A program made the translations under genes and the position numbers. From positions 14,942,001-15,006,000 of the forward strand of contig NC_088856.1 in assembly GCF_963853765.1 (NCBI RefSeq): DNA of 64,000 nt, in the 5' to 3' direction. Positions 40,980 to 51,653 of the stretch are shown one piece after another. How positions within the stretch are numbered: position 1 is the first letter of the stretch; each line of letters begins with the position of its first letter. This stretch comes from Magallana gigas (taxonomy: Eukaryota). The notes under the pieces were generated by a model, which worked only from the letters and a program-made list of their open reading frames with translations, was not told where the DNA came from and made no database searches.

Positions 40980-41392
40980 ATATTTACTCTTCTGTATTCT
41001 GCTGGTTTACAGGTGGTTCAAAACATACAAACATGTACATGTTAACTATTGATATTTACTCCCATTATTATTTAAATATTATGAAGGGATATGAGTTATT
41101 GAGTAAACTAACTACAGTTTTTTGTATGCATTGTTAACAAAGTTTGTGAACATCTCTCAGTCACAAACATCAGTTCCCCATTTTTTTTAAATATAAGTGC
41201 TTTGCAAAAATTATTGGTAAATCTGTACACTATGGACATCTGTTTACCAAACAAAAGACATGTAAAACCATTGCTTTGAAATTTGTATATCGTTCAATTT
41301 AATGATTGATGCCTGCATTTATGATTGGAAACAGACCTAGATTTACTGCCAAACTACCGATAGTCCACCGGTATGTTCTTTTTAGTGTGAAT

Positions 41393-41554
41393 TACTGTAT
41401 GCAGGGAAATATTCGCCTCTGGTTTTTTTCTTGCTCCTTTCCCCTTGTTCCGAATTTCAATGTCTCAACTGTGTCTGGGTAAATTCAAGACTGGGCGAAG
41501 CCTTTTGCAAGTATAGAAGGCCGAAATAATACCTCGTGAAAATAACCCTGTTTA
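41393..41554. mobile_element. MITE remnant (tactgtatgcagggaaatattcgcc ... gaaaataaccctgt)
   Basis: Imperfect terminal inverted repeats; right end eroded. Confidence 0.45.
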
Positions 41555-41858
41555 GGGTCTAAGATAGTTAATTCTTTTAACGAGGCCCGAGCTAGTTCGC
41601 GTTTTCGATCTCATTGCGCAGCTCGAATGGTTTCCGGTTGGCGTTTTGCTCTCGCTTTCGTAATATGTAGAATAGATGGAGTTTAATCTAAACGTAAATA
41701 ATTACTTTCTTTTAAACATAAAATAAATTAATATTGCATATTTTTAGCAGTTTAACCTAGTTTGACACAACGAATTAATTTACGACTTCTTCAAGTTCTT
41801 GTCACTTTACGGCATTGTTTACGTTGACACCAGACGACTGTCAGACAGGCCGTCGAAG

Positions 41859-42549
41859 ATGGTTAACAGAACGAAAAAAGGAAGGTTTTTAAAACCGACA
41901 CAGGTTGCACGTTATAATCAGCAATTGAAAAATTTACACAAATCAAGTGAAGAATGTGACCAGCTCGTAAATCTTGATACTTTTGTGCCTTTATTTGATA
42001 CTCAATCTACTCCTGCTGCGGGCAGCACTTTAGATGATCATTCGTATATACAGTCAACAGGTTCTTTTGATGAAATTAATGAAGCATTTTTTAGTGGAAA
42101 ATTAAGAGCTTTAGACTTTACAAGACATGTGGTAGATCTGCAAGCATTGTTCAACAACATGAAATGCGTGGATTGCGCAAATGTGTCATTGAAGTTCAAG
42201 GATGCTGTGGGAGTTTTACCAGCTGGTATTTGTGGGCACTTGGTGATAAGGTGCTACAACTGTCTTCGGATTGTACAAGTTGCCATGGGAAAAACACATT
42301 CATCACCACATGGTCAACAGATATTTGATGTAAACACCAAATTAGCAACTGGTATGTATATATAATATACATGTATTTATCCTTTTTTTTAAATACCACA
42401 TAAAATTTCCACAAAATAAAAAGTGAAAAAAAAATTGAATCACAATGAAAATTAAAGAAAAACTATTCAATTATTATCATCAATTAAACACACAATTAAC
42501 TTATTTTCTAAAAATCAAAATAATTTAGTTTTTTATGTATGAGAGAGTC

Positions 42550-42592
<43 letters not shown>

Positions 42593-45500
42593 TATGAACA
42601 GTAGATATTTTATTTTAAAGTATGCAAAATGTGATTGTGCCTATTTTTTGTAAATTTGAAAGCTATACTGGCGTGCGACCAGTTCTCGCCGAGTATCATT
42701 TCTCGCCCGTACATTGTGATGTCATTTTATGAACACATAAAATTATAAACGAAAAATGACGTCACAATGTACTGGCGAGAAATGGTACTCGGCGAGAACT
42801 GGTCGCACGCCAGTACAATTTATGTATTAGGGATATTCACCATTAAATTTTGATGCCTTTAAATTTTCTGCTTTTACAGTTTTGCTATACACATTCTAAA
42901 TTTATAGGCATGTACCATAGTGGAATTGGTCCAGTCCAACTTAACAACCTTTTCACATCAATGAACTTGCCAAACATCAGTGAGAGCCTGATAAGAAGAA
43001 GATGTGATGAAGTAGGGCATGTGCTGGAAGACTTGGCCGAGGAATCTACCAGTAAAGCTCTATGTGAAGAGGGGCATTTATCAGCCACAAGTAAGCATAT
43101 TTGAACTTTTTCTAATGAACATGCATGTACATTTAGCTTTGACACTGTTGAAAGTAAGATTTTTAAATCAATTAAAGTTAACTTAGGTAAATATTACATC
43201 ACAAATTACACATTAAGGCCAAAAAAAAATTATTATAGTTATATATTTTAGTTTTTTATCAATGAAAACACATTTTTGCACAAATCTATTAATGTAATGG
43301 TATATACCGCCACCCAATCCTATCGCTCACCCAAAATAAATAATTGGCCTAAAAAAAGATTCAATGCATTCTAAATGGAAACAAAAATGAAAATCTAAAT
43401 GATACAACTAAAGTAAANNNNNNNNNNNNNNNNNNNNNNNNNNNNNNNNNNNNNNNNNNNNNNNNNNNNNNNNNNNNNNNNNNNNNNNNNNNNNNNNNNN
43501 NNNNNNNNNNNNNNNNNNNNNNNNNNNNNNNNNNNNNNNNNNNNNNNATTACAGTAAAAAATGGAATTGAGTCATTCTGTTGTACATTAATGTTTAACAA
43601 AATTTATCAATATTTTTAGACAGTATTGAGTCCACTGGAATAACAGCTTCTGCAGATGGTGCTTACCAGAGAAGAGGATCAGGAAGATGTTACAATAGTC
43701 TGTCAGGTAAATAACAAATGTCGATGTATTACATAAAGTTTAGTGTTATTTTTAATTCCTTTGTAATAAGACACAACATTTTATTAGAACTGACTGCTCT
43801 GCATGTACATAATGTACTGTACCCTACAGTGATCAGTTGGTCTGTCAATCTGTCCATTTATGAATCTTTGTTTGGGGCGGAACAAATCTTGCTTTTCCAT
43901 AAAGGCCAAACATATTTTTTTTATCTTGTTTATGATTCAGAAAGTAATTTTTTGGCAGATCAATATATATAGATTATTACATGGCAATTTTTATATCGCA
44001 TCCTATATTAGCCCGAGGTCGCTGTATATCATCTCTGATAAACTTCTATGGAATTTTTTGCGCCAGCTGTTTGTATACCAAGTTGACATTAATTGACGTC
44101 ATACTCGGAGATCGAAGTTGAAGGACGCATACCGAACTCTACATCATAATAGCCGATAATTAACGGAAAGGGTTGTGATATAACATACGAAGATTGCCGG
44201 GTTTATATCACACCCCTAGGCGAATTTACTGTTTATATCGCACAGGGCGGAAAAGGGTATATTTTCTATAAGTATACGATATATTAATAATGATTATACA
44301 TGCAGACTTATTAATGCTGTTTGAATATTACAGGCACTGCAACTCTAATTGGTAAAAGGACTGGCAAAATTGTGGGTTTCTCTGCTCGATACAAAAGATG
44401 CAGAAAATGTGATGTGGCGAAGGCGAAGCACAGAACCCCCAACAAGCATGCATGTAAGAAAAATTGGACTGGCACCGCGAAATCTATGGAACCTGACATG
44501 ATTGTAGAAATACTTAAGGAAGTCAAAGACAAGAATAATCCTGTTGTTACACTGATTGGAGATGACGATTGCACAGCTTTCAACAGAGCAAGATGTGAAG
44601 TTAGTTCTTGCATTGAAAAGTTAAGTGACAGAAATCATGTGAAAAAGAATATTTCCAACAAACTCTATAAATTAAAATCAAAACACAAAGAGCTTTCTGT
44701 TAAAACGATTACGGCCATAATGAAGAGTTTCAGCTACATGCTAGCACAGTGCAAGGAAGACACGGACAAAATAGAAAAATCTATAGACTCTGTTGTTCTT
44801 CACCAGTTTGGTGACCATGTAAAATGTGGCGAATGGTGTAACATGAAGGAAAACCCAACTGCTAGACACAAGAATCTTCCATGGGGAGCAGATCTACAGA
44901 ATGAAAAACTGAAAACTGATTTATTGACTTTGTTCAGAGATCTTGATCCCAGCAAGCTAAGCAGACTAGACTCTAGCAACTGCAATGAAAGCTTTAACAA
45001 TACGTTAAGATCTAAGGCTCCAAAAGACAAGCACTACAGTGAGAGTGGAAGCTTGGCATATAGACTTTCTGCAGCTGTTTGCCAAAAGAATGAAGGCTAT
45101 AGCTATGTAGCAAAGGTATTAAAACTTTGAGTGGAGCATTCTATTTTTTTTAGGACAAAAATCAATGATGATGTACATGTAATTATGAAATAATTTTCAT
45201 TTTCTTGTTTTAATAATTGAGTGCTATCTTTTAGGTTCATGAGAAGCTTGGACTTAGTCCTGGGACAGCAACAACCTCGCTAGCCTCCATCAGAGACAGA
45301 GATGTTCATCGCAAAAGAGAAGTTTCAAAAACAAAAGAATTCAAGGTATATAAAAATAATATAGATGAATTTCATACAAATTTTCTTTAAGCTTACACAG
45401 CAAAAAAAACCCTCAAAATATACCATAATTATAGTATTAAACTTCATATAGGCATAGATGTATATGTACGTATGCATGCATGATCAAACCTTTTCATTAG

Positions 45501-46167
45501 TAAAGATATATAGAAATTGTTTATACATGTAATTAAAATCTATTCATTTGTTACTTTACAAGATGACAATTAGATTGGTTTCTTTTTGCACAGTTGCAAC
45601 GTCAAAAACTAAAGAGTGAAAGGAGTGGAGAAACTAGGAGCCAAGAAGTCAGAGAGGGTGACAGCTACTCATCAAATCTTTTAGGTGATTTTACTTAGTA
45701 ATTCTATAAGAGTATATCTATTTTTGATTGATCATTTAGATATTTAGCCAAAAGTATGTACGATCTTATTACCGGTATATACCACTATGCAATCAAGGTT
45801 TAAGGGAAGGTGAGGAAAACATTAGAGTTGCCAAGTTTGTCCTGTGACTTTCAAATTTTGGGTGCAGATTCCAATCTGACTCATACTTTATACACAATGT
45901 GTATTTGGTGGGCAGTATAATTTGAACAAAGTTTCTAGTTCAAATGTGATGGTGATACTAGTAGTCTTATGTGTAAGTTCCTTATCTACTATATAATTAT
46001 ATCAGTGATACAATTATAATACATTTATTGTAGGAGACACACCTGACCCAGATATGGAAGTAATTCCTGGACCATCAGATGTTTGTAACGCCAAAACAAT
46101 TGTATACTATGATCTGGAGACAACAGGATTGAGTATGTCTACATTTGTACATTAATTTATATAGTTA

Positions 46168-46200
<33 letters not shown>

Positions 46201-46291
46201 ATTATGATCACATTTTGTCTGTCGTCCGTCTGTCTGTCTGTCCGTTTGTCCGTCCGTCTGTCTGTAAACTTTTCACATTTTCAACATCTTC

Positions 46292-46340
<49 letters not shown>

Positions 46341-46764
46341 AGCCTAAGGGGATTCAAAGTTGTGAAAATTAAGGACCACGCCCTTTTGCAAAGGGAGATA
46401 ATTAGGAATTTATGAAAATTTTCGAGAAATTTTCAAAAATCTTCTTCTCATGAACCATAAGACCAGGAAAGCTGAAACTTGTGTGGAAGCATCCTCAGGT
46501 AGTGTAGATACAAAATTGTGAAAATCATGACCCCCGGGGGTAGGGTGGGCCACAATGGGGGGTCGAAATTTAACATAGGAATATATAGAGTAAATCTTTA
46601 AAAATCTTCTTCTTAGAAACTAATCAGCTAGGAAAGCTGACACTTGTGTGGAAGCATCCTCAGGTAGTGTAAATTCAAAGTATGTATTATGTATTATTGT
46701 ACATTGTCCAGATAGTTTGTATTATGACTCCATTAAGCTGATTTTATCATACCTATTGTTTCTA

Positions 46765-46797
<33 letters not shown>

Positions 46798-48539
46798 TAT
46801 TAACCATGATTTTATGTTTCTTAACTATATTGAACAAAGTTTTTACGTATACTTCTGTTACTCTTAAAGATAATATAGAAGCTATAGAAAAATCCAAAAT
46901 GATAAATGTGAACCATTCAATCAATCAATCCGTCAATTTACAAATTATGTTCATTTGTTATTTTGTTTGATTTAGAGTTTTGCTGTTAAATGTTAGTTTG
47001 CATGATGTTTCCTTTTTGATACAATATTATCTTGTTTTTATTTTTACCAATAGCAGGTCAACATCAGGAATTCTAGGATTTCTACAATCACATCACACAG
47101 CCGACAGCTCTTTTCTTTGTAGCTAGTTCATCATTTATTTGCTGGTATATTTCTGATCAATCATAGAAATGTTTTATAGCTCGATTAAACATCTAATAAT
47201 CAGACTTCAAGCATAATATATAAGAAATTTATCACATTTTTAGCTCAAAATCAATGGATATCACTTTTTTTCATGCATAAAGTTGTTGACATACCAGTAT
47301 TGTAGTAAATGTGTTATGTGGCTTACAACAGTGAAATTTGTTGAACAGATCAAAGTTAAACAAAAGATGTGGAAAAACATGATAAAAAGATCTCTCATGA
47401 TTTGCGATGGCATATGAATTTTATCCAACTCGCTGTGTTTTCTATCCCCTTGCCAATACTAAGGGATAGAAACACAAGAAAAGAAATAAATAGCAATGTC
47501 GAAAAGTTCACTGGAATGTAAACTTGGTTGGTCACGTGACCAAAGGAAGGACTTCTCAGAAGATCTGATTATGTACCATTGCAACCAAGTTCATATCCCA
47601 GTGAACTTTTTAATATTGCTAATTATTACTTATATTAATTTACTTTTGAGAAAGTAAAATCTTTCTGAATTATAAATATAATGGTATCCTGTTTTTATGT
47701 TTTTGGATGTATGGGTAACCATTTCTCATTCCTTCTCTTCTCTTATAGGTAGAGAAAGCTCTATTATTCAAATTTCGGCAGTCTGTGAAGACCAAAAATT
47801 CAACAAATATGTCACACCAAGCCAGGACATTTCAGAAGAGGCCAGTAGAGTGACTGGAATGAAGTTTGATGCCTCAACCAATGAGCTGCTCCATAACAAT
47901 GTAGCTGTGTCACACAATCATCCACTACAAGTTCTTTTGGACTTTATTCAATTTGTTATGTTACTAGGGAAAAGCTGTGTATTAGTGGCACACAATAACA
48001 AATGTTTTGATTCTATTGTACTGTATAATCAGCTGAAATATTATAAAATATGGAACCACTTTTGTAAATATGTAGTGGGGTTTTGTGATACCTTGCCTTT
48101 TTTTAAAGTTGTGTATCCTGGTTTTGATTGTTATAAGCAAGAATATCTTGCTCAAAAAGTGTTGAATGAGTCTTATTCAGCTCATAATTCATTAGCTGAT
48201 TCTGAAATGCTTCAGACCCTTGTGAAAAGTAGTGGGAAAGTTGATGTTTTACTCGCTGATTTTTTTTATAGTACAGTTCAAGTGACTAGTCATGGTGTTC
48301 AACCATCTGTAGAATCCATAGAGTATTTACAGAAGCAAAATGTCATTTCAAAAGCAACTTTGAAAAAGATCAAATGTTCGTCACTATCATACAACCATTT
48401 GAAACTTGCATTTGAAAGAAAAGGTTTTGATGGTGTGTTTTTCTTGTTTAGTGAAAAGACAAGTGATGGTAAAGCTAGAGTAAGCAGCAATTATAAAGTT
48501 GCAAAGAAGGTTGCTGAATTTTTTTCAAGTTTGCAATAA
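41859..48539 (+). CDS. DDE transposase fused to a DEDDh 3'-5' exonuclease, 878 aa; exons 41859-42351, 42908-43090, 43620-43706, 44334-45115, 45235-45345, 45594-45684, 46034-46132, 47749-48539
   Basis: N-terminal CxxC...CxxC; catalytic-type motifs ASADGAYQRRG, LIGDDD and SNCNESFN; RCRKC...HACKKNW; C-terminal ExoI YYDLETTG, ExoII VAHNNKCFD and ExoIII AHNSLADS. 2637 nt in frame over canonical GT-AG introns. An extra exon hidden in the gap at 43418-43547 cannot be excluded. Confidence 0.85.
42553..42588 (+). repeat. (GA)n microsatellite
   Basis: Direct reading. Confidence 0.9.
42666..42815. mobile_element. Near-palindromic MITE with TA TSD in transposase intron 1
   Basis: ~63-bp arms tactggcgtgcgaccagttctcgccgagta... 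/ ...tactcggcgagaactggtcgcacgccagta. Confidence 0.85.
46168..46796 (-). mobile_element. Internally deleted HINE (same family as 101-2608) in transposase intron 7
   Basis: Reverse complement of both HINE termini, the (gtcc/gtct)n microsatellite and ~2 satellite monomers. Confidence 0.85.
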
Positions 48540-48829
48540 ATATATATCATCATGTTGTATTTGTTAAAACATTTTGTGTTATTACATTTTATGGATATCA
48601 ATCTTGTAATATGTCTGCATGTGTATTACATTAATTAAACTGTTGTCACTGTTATATCATCTCAATTCTGCCTTACTAACATGTTGTGTTTCAATGCAAT
48701 CCAACCACACTATAAATAAAAATTTTCAAATGATTCAATCATTATTCTCCTACTGATTGTAAATTTTATCCATTATAAGCAATATTAGCTCTCTGCATGG
48801 GAAAAAAATCCATACACAAGATTTGGAAA

Positions 48830-49990
48830 AAATGGCCTCTTTAACTATGAATTGGGTTTTGAGACACCCCTCTTCATATTTCAAGAGGGAAACGCCTTTT
48901 TTTCTTTTTTCAATTTTTGATAGAGGAAAATTATTTGAATGTAATATACATATCATTGAATTTCCATCCTCCAAAGTTTGAAAAATATCACAAGAATGGC
49001 TAAAGATGACCATTCATTTTTACCTTTATATTGGATTTTGAGATGCTCCTTCTTTGTATTTTCAAGGAAAACACATTTTCTGCATCAGTTTTGAAAGAGA
49101 GCGAAATGTTCTATGTTCATATGAAGCATTGAATCTTCCATTTTATAATATTTAGCTTAGCATAAAACGTAAGTTCTGCAAAAGATGACCATTTTCACCT
49201 ATACATTGGGTTTTAAGACGCCCCCTCTTTATTATTTTTAGGGAAACACCACATTATCTTCATTAATTTTGAAAGAGGAAGAACTGATGTGTGTTATATA
49301 TGTAGCATTGAATATTCCACCCTCTAAAGTTTAGCATAGCGTAAAAAGTCTTACAAAAGATGACCATTTTCACCTATATATTGGGTTTTGAGATGCTCCC
49401 TCTTCATTTCTTTTAGGGAAACACCTCATTGCCTTCATCAATTTGGAAAAAAGAAAAAATGATGTGTGTTATATATGCAGCATTGAATCTTCCATCTTCT
49501 AAACTTTAGCCTAGCATAAAACGTTCTGCAAAAGATGACAATTTTCACCTATATATTGGGTTTTTGAGACGCCCCCTCTTCATTTTTTTAGGGAAACACC
49601 ACATTATCTTCATCAATTTTGAAAGAGGAAGAATTGATCTGTGTTATATATGTAGCATTGAATATTCCACCCTCTAAAATTTAGCATAGCGTAAAGTCTT
49701 ACAAAAGATGACCATTTTCACCTATATATTGGGTTTTGAGACGTTCCCACTTAACATTTTCAAGGGAAACACCCCTCATTTTATATTTATTTTCAAAGAC
49801 GGAAGTAAAAGTGTTCATTTTGTATCAATTGTTCGATTTTCTACCCTCTAGAATTTTTTCTACATCAAAAGAAAGATACCAAATTTCCATTTTCCCTATA
49901 TAATGCATACAATTTTCCAACAAAATGAATACATATTTTGAGACTCCCCCTATTCACTACAATAAGGGAAACATGGTAATTTTTTTACGT
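48830..49990 (+). repeat. ~175-bp tandem array (about 6-7 units) near the right end of the transposon
   Basis: aagatgaccattttcacctatatattgggttttgagac...gggaaacac recurs at ~49003, 49181, 49358, 49532 and 49705. Confidence 0.85.
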
Positions 49991-51653
49991 CACTTAATTG
50001 AAAGTGTGATTTAAAGTATCTACCATAGAAATAAGCAAATTCCACCCTACAGTATTTTAATTATTCAACTAGAATGGGCCTCGTTAAATTCAATTGTTTT
50101 GCATTTTTTTACGTACACTTCCAAAAAGCTGCAAACTCAAATCTTTTCAGCTATAAAAAGTAAAGTTGTCTCACGTTTAGCTTCCAATAGGGAATTCTCC
50201 ATTATTTAGTTATAAAATCATGGACATACATACAATGTATAAAGGTTCACCCGTAGGAATCTTGTAGTCTTCACAAATCAGGAGCACATATCATAATGTA
50301 TATTCAAATTGTGTCAAATCTTTGTTTTTGAATTAGGTTATTACAAGTATTTTTATATGTGTATTTAAAATTTTATTGTTGGCAAAAGATTAATTGTGGA
50401 GTTTTTTATCAAGAAGTAAAAAAAAAATGGATTGTTTCACTGATATTCCACTGTAGCATGCATTTTAAATTAATTTGTCCTTGCTGCAATGGATGTCATT
50501 TATTTAAAATATTTAACAAATGTGATGATTCTTAATAATATTATGATTTTAATCATATTTTATTTGTAATGATTTTAAGGATGCTTGTCCTGTGATATTT
50601 TCTGAAAGAAAGGTTGTTTGATGTTGAAAGGGATTTTTTGTGTAATTTCTGTGTCAACATATCTAGATTTGAAGAGTTTGATAAGCCAACCTATCTGTAT
50701 TTTTAATGCTCAGTATGATGGTCATCAAATGACATTTTCTTGGCAAGAAACTCTATTCAGAATTAATAACTTGGGAATAATGTATCAGGATTCTATTTAT
50801 CGCAATATATGTATAACAAATTTTTTGTCTCATTTTAAACCCTTGTTACTCTGGTGACACAGATGCACTAGTATGTGGTGATATTGTATTGGGAAATGGG
50901 CTCTTGTAATTTACTTGTCAGTGAAGTGTGAAGTCTGTATTATATTTTTTATTTTCATCTACAAAGACAATCCTTTGAAATCTTAATCTATTTTCTATTT
51001 TAGAAAATGAAACTGATAACACTAAAGATACATTCATTCTTAAGACATCATGTACTAAGATTCATTTTGTGAAACATTAGAATTTGACCCTCTCCTGGCA
51101 TTCCACTACTTTTGGTACATTCCTCTCCTCTGTGTTTATATGGTGCTCATAGAAGGCAGTGATGTCAAGGAAAGTTGTCCCTATATACTGTAAGGTTATA
51201 TTTTGCCAAAAACAATAAACTTACAAACCATTGGAAGTGTTAGTTCTTGTCATGTTGACTGATGAATGTGGTTTGATTGATCAGTCATTTGTTGTAAAAC
51301 GTCCATTGCAGTAATTTCTTTTTATGATGTGTAAGTATTGCACAAAACTTCATCATATTTGGCTTCGAATTACAATGGGAGAATCGTTTTATGTTTACAT
51401 TTCCATTATGTGAGATTCTATTCTGCAAAGTTAGACCATTTACTTGAAAAGTGCGACTTCAAAATGGATATTTACTGATTCTGTAAAATCTGTCGGTTAG
51501 GATTTATTTGCTTGAATTATAAAGGGACTTTCAGTACTTCAGTACTTTGATTATATAAAGCATAGTAAAAGTTACACACTAACATGTACAGTGCTGCACA
51601 AATTCAGAAAAATGTGCTAAATGAGTGCAAAAGAAAATAATGCATATGACATG

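Follow-up and report, generated by a model that had tools for sequence, protein, structure and literature searches.

The question raised by this stretch of Magallana gigas DNA (the window, 64,000 nucleotides (nt) of contig NC_088856.1) is what kind of element occupies positions 41581-50083, and whether the transposase and the exonuclease encoded there are made as one protein. Our analysis indicates that this compact 8.5-kb segment, with TTAA adjoining each end, is very probably a coding-intact copy of a low-copy, young oyster DNA transposon family of the Kolobok superfamily, KolobokD lineage. We regard it as a member of the known KolobokD kind that is either new or possibly in the databases already. 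Three of its features go beyond the text of the KolobokD paper (PMC9587614): termini that read CG, a Plex9.1-like nuclease with a PML_C/SAM-like tail, and a stop-carrying exon at the nuclease junction.

The ends of the element were defined by repeat analysis and by comparison of copies. In the window and likewise in the copies on C8, C1 and C10, each of which has different flanks, the left TTAA target-site duplication (41577-41580 in the window) immediately adjoins the element; the right TTAA (50084-50087) was placed from the window and the copy comparison. Inside them lie the 5' terminal inverted repeat (TIR) of 17 nt, which begins CG (41581-41597, + strand), and the 3' TIR, whose last letters are CG (50067-50083, - strand). 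The left repeat reads CGAGGCCCGAGCTAGTT and the right one, as reverse complement, CGAGGCCCATTCTAGTT, with 14 of the 17 positions matching. Counts of the end sequences agreed with these boundaries (left-end 23-mer: 6 genome occurrences; right-end 22-mer: 8; control patterns: 0). Each copy end examined reads either TTAA followed directly by CGAGGCCC or GGGCCTCG followed directly by TTAA, the termini just inside TTAA being 5'-CGAGG...CCTCG-3' in all copies examined. Similarity between the copies and the window sets in precisely with position 41577 and ends with position 50087, the flanks beyond being unrelated, and TTAA was present on both sides of three complete copies and at every single end examined. 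The prediction of a transposon with shared TTAA/TIR ends is thus borne out, as is the reading that the ends begin with CG and that long terminal direct repeats are lacking: repeat analysis detected no terminal direct repeats within the element, the only long direct repeats being a 175-nt array near the 3' end. An empty site was sought through the left flank and no uninterrupted paralogue was found, another repeat stopping 10-26 nt before the TTAA. That flank (41390-41570) is part of a dispersed repeat with ~590 first-look candidates.

The exon 4 sequence gave seven near-full matches in the oyster genome (100, 99, 99, 99, 96, 96 and 93% identity). The four youngest copies are ~99% (98-99%) alike, exons and non-exon sequence equally, and the older copies show 90-97% identity. 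Most copies are damaged, with frameshifts in C10b, C4b and C7, loss of the 5' part plus a 7-nt insertion in C10a, and an exon 8 interrupted by an insertion in the copy on C8. All eight exons are open in two copies, namely the compact copy in the window and a C1 copy swollen to 32.7 kb by insertions. Two changes are private to the window copy: a 4-nt TAGC duplication at 47120, inside the alternative exon 7a described below, and a deletion of ~230 nt after 47265 that are present in all other copies. Because the copies are young and two of them have complete frames, potential activity, the first half of the original prediction of a potentially active or distinct lineage, stays plausible.

The gene lies on the + strand in eight exons, with GT-AG at all introns and an exon total of 2637 nt, corresponding to 878 codons plus stop. 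The exons were searched one at a time, and whole-protein analyses used the database protein XP_065937493.1, which equals the exon model. This Magallana gigas protein ("uncharacterized protein isoform X1", 878 amino acids) contains all eight exon peptides, exact and in order, and its exon-junction residues (G, N, G, -, -, G, S) are as predicted from the exon model. The predicted 878-codon spliced frame is identical to it exon for exon, and the gene is already public in RefSeq as an uncharacterized protein. Exon 1 (41859-42351) holds the start codon, a low-confidence N-terminus, a CCCC zinc finger and the beginning of the PF20700 match. Exon 2 (42908-43090) is supported by Pfam and by the peptide match to the public protein, and exon 3 (43620-43706), which carries the first catalytic aspartate, D238, by Pfam, the public protein and the alignment. 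The CCHC finger, D331, the DxxH motif (D353/H356), the second zinc finger and the catalytic E473 all lie on exon 4 (44334-45115), which alone matches PF20700 at 9.8e-36. Exon 5 (45235-45345) and the linker exon 6 (45594-45684) agree with the public protein and are connected by an RNA joint, 45343 to 45592 (cut +2), seen in three RNA runs. Exon 7 (46034-46132) contains further linker and exonuclease motif I (D609-L-E611-TTGL); the public protein and the alignment support it, and its donor at 46132 is used in RNA. Exon 8 (47749-48539) provides the rest of the DEDDh exonuclease (D703, H761, D766; RNase_T 2.5e-8), a PML_C/SAM-like domain (PML_C 6.2e-15) and the stop codon. No other open reading frame (ORF) longer than 102 amino acids was found on either strand of the element.

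An assembly gap (N) occupies 43418-43547 inside intron 2, and the frame is carried on across it by the splice 43090 to 43620. PF20700 is colinear over exons 1-4 (exon 2, profile positions 80-136; exon 3, positions 150-171), with 13 profile positions unmatched between exons 2 and 3 compared to 8 residues in the model. In this region, 12 of the 14 homologues are colinear within -6 to +4 residues. Moreover, in the assembled transcript ORFs P0318 and P0214 of the same family, exon 2 is spliced straight onto exon 3, N being the one residue encoded by the split codon. Given the colinearity of profile and homologues and the transcript joint, no coding sequence is hidden in the gap.

Pfam analysis of XP_065937493.1 identified PF20700 ("Mutator-like transposase") at residues 89-423 (1.7e-72), RNase_T at 606-770 and PML_C at 803-876, along with Exu_RNase_H_like; Pfam found no HNH-type domain, either exon by exon or over the complete protein. 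We then compared these assignments with an alignment of 31 full-length relatives. Both aspartates of the DDE triad (D238, D331, E473) are invariant in them, and E473 is conserved in at least 90%, as is the N-terminal CCCC zinc finger (C103/C106/C132/C135). Three further elements are invariant or at least 90% conserved: the CCHC finger downstream of the first catalytic aspartate (C277, C280, H293, C295), the D353-x-x-H356 motif, and the histidine/cysteine cluster between DxxH and the catalytic glutamate (H411/H416, C419, C423). All five DEDDh residues (D609, E611, D703, H761, D766) are invariant. In the AlphaFold model of the transposase part (predicted local distance difference test (pLDDT) 78.6, predicted template modelling score 0.73), the nearest structure was ISCth4 of the IS256 family (Z 12.7, 268 residues aligned, root-mean-square deviation (rmsd) 5.8), followed by Hermes (Z 10.3) and then the P element; the profile of relatives gave no PDB sequence match for this part. 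As modelled, the transposase core is an RNase-H-like DDE fold, nearest to IS256, hAT and P-element transposases, and a disordered linker separates it from the exonuclease.

Foldseek superimposed the nuclease part, taken from the model of the complete protein (pLDDT 80.9), on zebrafish Plex9.1 with a template modelling score of 0.93, an rmsd of 1.6 and 28% identity. The structure matches that followed were the Exuperantia EXO-SAM, then DnaQ, TREX2 and TREX1. In the sequence comparison, the profile of relatives matched the four Plex9-like PDB chains with E values of 1e-55 to 1e-60; the value was 6e-19 for Exu, 1e-12 for TREX2 and 4e-11 for TREX1. Exon 8 alone matched 9l8b at 7e-25, and exon 7 alone, too short a query, gave no match to PDB sequences. 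Taken on sequence profile and predicted structure, the nuclease is closer to Plex9/PML than to TREX1/2. The conserved residues and the Plex9 matches in sequence and structure agree with the predicted complete, PML-like DEDDh nuclease. Its active site is split in the gene, with motif I (DLE) on exon 7 and the remainder on exon 8, so a complete nuclease can arise only through the splice from 46132 to 47749.

The exon 4 search retrieved 2317 representative proteins at E <=0.001. In 66 of the best 150 relatives, the transposase is followed, at a spacing that does not vary, by an exon-8-like nuclease on the same polypeptide, and five of these relatives align to exons 7 and 8 without one extra junction residue. 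Proteins combining PF20700, PF00929 and PF25244 occur in bivalves (Crassostrea, Saccostrea, Ostrea, Pinctada, Mytilus, Pecten, Argopecten, Mizuhopecten, Mya and Mercenaria), in hemichordates (Ptychodera and Saccoglossus) and in insects (Ischnura, Frankliniella and several wasps and ants). Related families also supply uninterrupted fusion ORFs of 833-924 amino acids on contigs of 2.9-4.8 kb. Judged from these protein sequences, the transposase-nuclease fusion is the usual architecture among relatives. For a KolobokD element, the missing terminal direct repeats and the single polypeptide, which had been counted as departures from known elements, are no departures. A homologue search with exon 8 returned just sister families at no more than 67% identity, in a length window that hides full-length proteins. 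The oyster genome holds at least 641 first-look candidates of this transposase clan. Two clan members, at C9:39411829-39412686 and C2:30052042-30054207, have one-piece open frames of 776 and 740 amino acids, which suggests that intron-poor families exist beside the intron-rich one in the same genome.

Kojima and Bao characterize Kolobok by duplication of TTAA, by a C/DxxH motif and a zinc finger that precedes the catalytic glutamate, and by 5'-RR...YY-3' termini (PMC9587614). The same paper lists a CCHC finger after the first aspartate for KolobokP, KolobokE and KolobokD, and describes KolobokD as Kolobok with a DEDDh nuclease, occurring in mollusks, in arthropods and in cnidarians (Kojima and Bao 2022, Mob DNA 13:24, PMC9587614). 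In the oyster element we found TTAA flanks with short TIRs, a DDE transposase with DxxH and a zinc finger between DxxH and the glutamate, as in Kolobok. As in KolobokD, the CCHC finger lies downstream of the first aspartate, the nuclease is a DEDDh (DnaQ-like) exonuclease resembling Exuperantia and TREX, and the host is a mollusc with relatives of the element in arthropods. By eye, the transposase motif string matches the rows for Kolobok-1, -7, -9_CGi and KolobokE in Data S5 (PMC9587614). The name KolobokD was not found in the supplements of that paper. Its text on KolobokD, shorter than a thousand characters, says nothing of how the gene is divided into exons, of both enzymes being one polypeptide, of a PML_C/SAM-like tail, of a relationship to Plex9 or of alternative splicing. 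Another Kolobok element, with a PD-(D/E)xK 5'-3' nuclease, belongs to the same superfamily, likewise places the nuclease downstream of the transposase, has the CCHC finger and comes very close in its core motif string; it differs in nuclease fold and polarity (5'-3' compared to DEDDh 3'-5' in the oyster element). A piggyBac assignment, to which the TTAA target specificity might point, was rejected, as Pfam finds just PF20700 and not the piggyBac DDE_Tnp_1_7, the termini differ, and only TTAA is in common.

RNA evidence came from three polyadenylated (polyA) or complementary DNA (cDNA) runs, in which depth on the exons was low (1-10). The intron-5 joint was found as predicted, with 10 reads. 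From the donor at 46132, 11 reads in the three runs were spliced to 47054 (GT..AG), which reveals an alternative exon 7a (47054-47144, + strand), in which a TAG closes the reading frame after 7 codons and the product has 622 residues. The start of this exon was seen directly, and its end was placed by the GT at 47145 and by read depth, the depth profile being consistent with an exon of about 90 nt at 47054. Most reads lack the 4 nt private to the window copy and therefore come from other copies or alleles. The resulting TGQHQEF tail ends the assembled transcript ORFs P0318 (622 amino acids, from the predicted ATG), P0214 and P0317, as well as the RefSeq model XP_065929957.1 on C10, and the assembled ORFs confirm every junction among exons 1-7. 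The acceptor of exon 7a, its TAG and the GT at 47145 are kept in all copies, the oldest included, and a genome search did not find exon 7a to be a nested high-copy repeat. In run X23, coverage of exon 8 was about equal to that of exon 7. The predicted splice from 46132 to 47749 was therefore upheld in part: its donor is used in transcripts, but every joint seen goes to 47054.

A related element of Crassostrea virginica (LOC111111186) was also compared. Its RefSeq isoforms have 893 and 661 amino acids with 631 residues in common, and they split exactly after ...FYDLETTGL; the nuclease follows in one isoform, a short tail in the other. This break point falls at the same residue as the exon 7/7a break in the Magallana gigas element. 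The split of the active site across a regulated intron, with the same break in the C. virginica family, suggests that the nuclease is deliberately dosed.

In the mechanism that we propose, the DDE part would excise the element and integrate it at TTAA, and the fused 3'-5' nuclease may trim 3' ends or flaps; these could belong to intermediates of transposition or repair, or to the donor or target under repair. Trimming of 3' ends or flaps by the KolobokD nuclease was proposed by Kojima and Bao (PMC9587614). Inclusion of exon 7a would give a protein with the full DDE core and nuclease motif I only, and splicing would thus set the ratio of nuclease-bearing to nuclease-less transposase. The Drosophila P element, whose transposase belongs to a related fold group, offers an analogy, since alternative processing of a late intron (the third intron in P) also leads to a C-terminally truncated protein. 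In P, truncation removes some of the catalytic domain and yields a known repressor, whereas the predicted 622-residue oyster form would keep the whole DDE core and be deprived of the accessory nuclease only. With intact ends, a complete frame and good RNA data, this copy is a usable start for asking what an exonuclease does in cut-and-paste transposition.

That this family never makes the fusion is an alternative we consider unlikely. It holds that exon 7a is always included, that only the 622-residue transposase is produced, and that the 878-codon frame is a homology-aided gene prediction; in line with this, the sole listed RNA joint from the exon-7 donor is the one to 47054, the three assembled ORFs and the C10 RefSeq model all end in TGQHQEF, and among the retrieved family proteins the exon 7-8 junction peptide occurs only in the RefSeq X1 model. 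However, the 99%-identical copies retain an open exon 8 with hardly any change, the DEDDh residues are invariant in the relatives, and with motif I on exon 7 exon 8 would be useless without the direct splice. Fusion ORFs without interruption are found in related families, and both isoforms, parting at the same residue, are annotated in C. virginica. The missing 46132-47749 joint is uninformative in this respect, as only some joints are listed and other introns that must be spliced are missing there too. A second alternative, that the locus is a domesticated host gene encoding a transposase-derived nuclease that is no longer mobile, appears very improbable: exact TIRs and TTAA are common to several copies at unrelated loci, non-coding parts are conserved as well as exons in the young copies (98-99%), and the majority of copies show decay by frameshift, insertion or truncation, which is what a transposon family would be expected to show. 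These facts outweigh its status in RefSeq as an ordinary protein-coding gene with isoforms and its spliced, low-level transcription.

With regard to lineage, the original prediction had pointed to KolobokP, with which the element shares TTAA targeting, a bivalve host and a Kolobok-like transposase with a CCHC finger. KolobokP is characterized by a small His-Me finger (HNH-type) nuclease and by long terminal direct repeats of about 450 or 660 bp (PMC9587614). Neither these repeats nor a second ORF or HNH-type domain is present in the oyster element, and its nuclease is of the DEDDh type, which defines KolobokD and not KolobokP; a KolobokP-type element or variant thus has hardly any likelihood left, and that family assignment was wrong. 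A separate Kolobok-related lineage marked by its CG termini, apart from the described KolobokD families, seems to us distinctly improbable. The CG...CG ends of every copy examined, as opposed to the published RR...YY rule, are the one ground for the distinct lineage originally suggested, to which may be added that short motifs of the element protein have no exact match in the supplements of PMC9587614. On the other hand, the element agrees with KolobokD in how its domains are ordered, in its two zinc fingers, in its kind of nuclease and in its host group, the transposase motif pattern is close to Kolobok-1, -7 and -9_CGi in Data S5, and that paper gives no termini for KolobokD, to which the RR...YY rule may not apply.

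Several points nevertheless weigh against the KolobokD assignment and the proposed function of the fusion. The termini fail the rule given for Kolobok as a whole, and the probable Kolobok placement of the transposase comes from the by-eye motif comparison and domain features. The splice from 46132 to 47749 is drawn, for this oyster family, from the RefSeq model and homology. No empty site or insertion polymorphism was seen, and recent mobility is deduced solely from copy identity. To our knowledge, no Kolobok transposase has been studied biochemically, and the role of the nuclease is conjecture.

The closeness of the nuclease to Plex9 and PML exonucleases was examined further. The C-terminal DEDDh exonucleases Plex9.1/PML of fishes (Mathavarajah et al. 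2023, PMC10123124; PDB 9MRC/9MRD) belong to the same nuclease family by sequence and structure, and the DEDDh residues are intact here as in Plex9. The C-terminal PML_C (SAM-like) domain of the oyster protein is likewise found in PML-1 and Exu, human PML-1 having an EXO-SAM module (PXL, PMC13659232). The oyster module differs in being the C-terminal part of a transposase in a multi-copy mobile element of a bivalve; Plex9 is a stand-alone vertebrate host gene syntenic with PML, and the oyster module is a relative of it, not an orthologue. A fish Plex9-like exonuclease (P0358, Eleginops maclovinus, 192 amino acids) is 38-41% identical to the nucleases of the oyster transposon and of a coral, and the stand-alone EXO-PML_C proteins of that coral (P0351/P0353, Montipora foliosa) are 38-41% identical to the fish Plex9-like and the transposon-borne nucleases. 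In an unrooted nuclease-domain tree, the fish Plex9-like sequence falls in the unresolved backbone among transposon nucleases; as the tree has no outgroup, direction is not readable from it.

Neither PML paper mentions transposons (PMC10123124, PMC13659232); among the papers searched, both Kolobok and PML are named solely in one general review, once each; and the 2026 PXL paper explicitly leaves open the origin of the PML-1/Plex9 EXO-SAM module (PMC13659232). We tentatively put forward a two-part proposal. In KolobokD elements, a conserved splicing switch just after motif I may decide between nuclease-bearing and nuclease-less transposase, a self-regulation akin to the intron-3 control of the P element; and the transposon EXO-SAM may be the source of the vertebrate Plex9/PML-1 exon-9 exonuclease domain, or share an immediate common ancestor with it. 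The link from transposon to PML is absent from both PML papers and from the Kolobok paper (PMC10123124, PMC13659232, PMC9587614), and is a lead, not a result. The closeness to fish Plex9.1 and PML_C makes it a testable lead on the origin of the module. Merely as a transposon annotation the element is ordinary, its specialist interest lying in the CG termini, the conserved stop-carrying exon and the Plex9/PML relationship.

Several repeats lie within the element. Intron 1 contains a nested palindromic miniature inverted-repeat transposable element of 150 nt (42666-42815), with 63-nt arms that are 95% complementary and at least 943 first-look candidates (94-97% identity) in the whole genome, and also a (GA)n microsatellite (42541-42590). 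A very abundant nested repeat with 165-nt internal tandem units occupies 46171-46791 in intron 7, as delimited by copy comparison, genome search and RNA depth. Genome-wide it gave at least 4999 first-look candidates, and it is also found in long arrays, such as those close to 50.09 Mb on C6 and to 52.80 Mb on C3. The window copy and the young copies have it in common; two older copies, L016 and L018, lack it. RNA depth over this repeat was 50-200 compared to 1-10 on the exons, with polyA RNA on both strands. Intron 7 further holds an inverted repeat (47476-47636) with 55-nt arms, 82% complementary and 51 nt apart, over which RNA depth was slightly raised. Near the 3' end, repeat analysis and genome search identified an array of about six 175-nt tandem units (48836-49973), which takes up the non-coding 3' portion of the element. 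The unit is confined to copies of this element family (12 candidate loci in the genome), so the array is a subterminal one belonging to the element, and it may provide transposase-binding sites.

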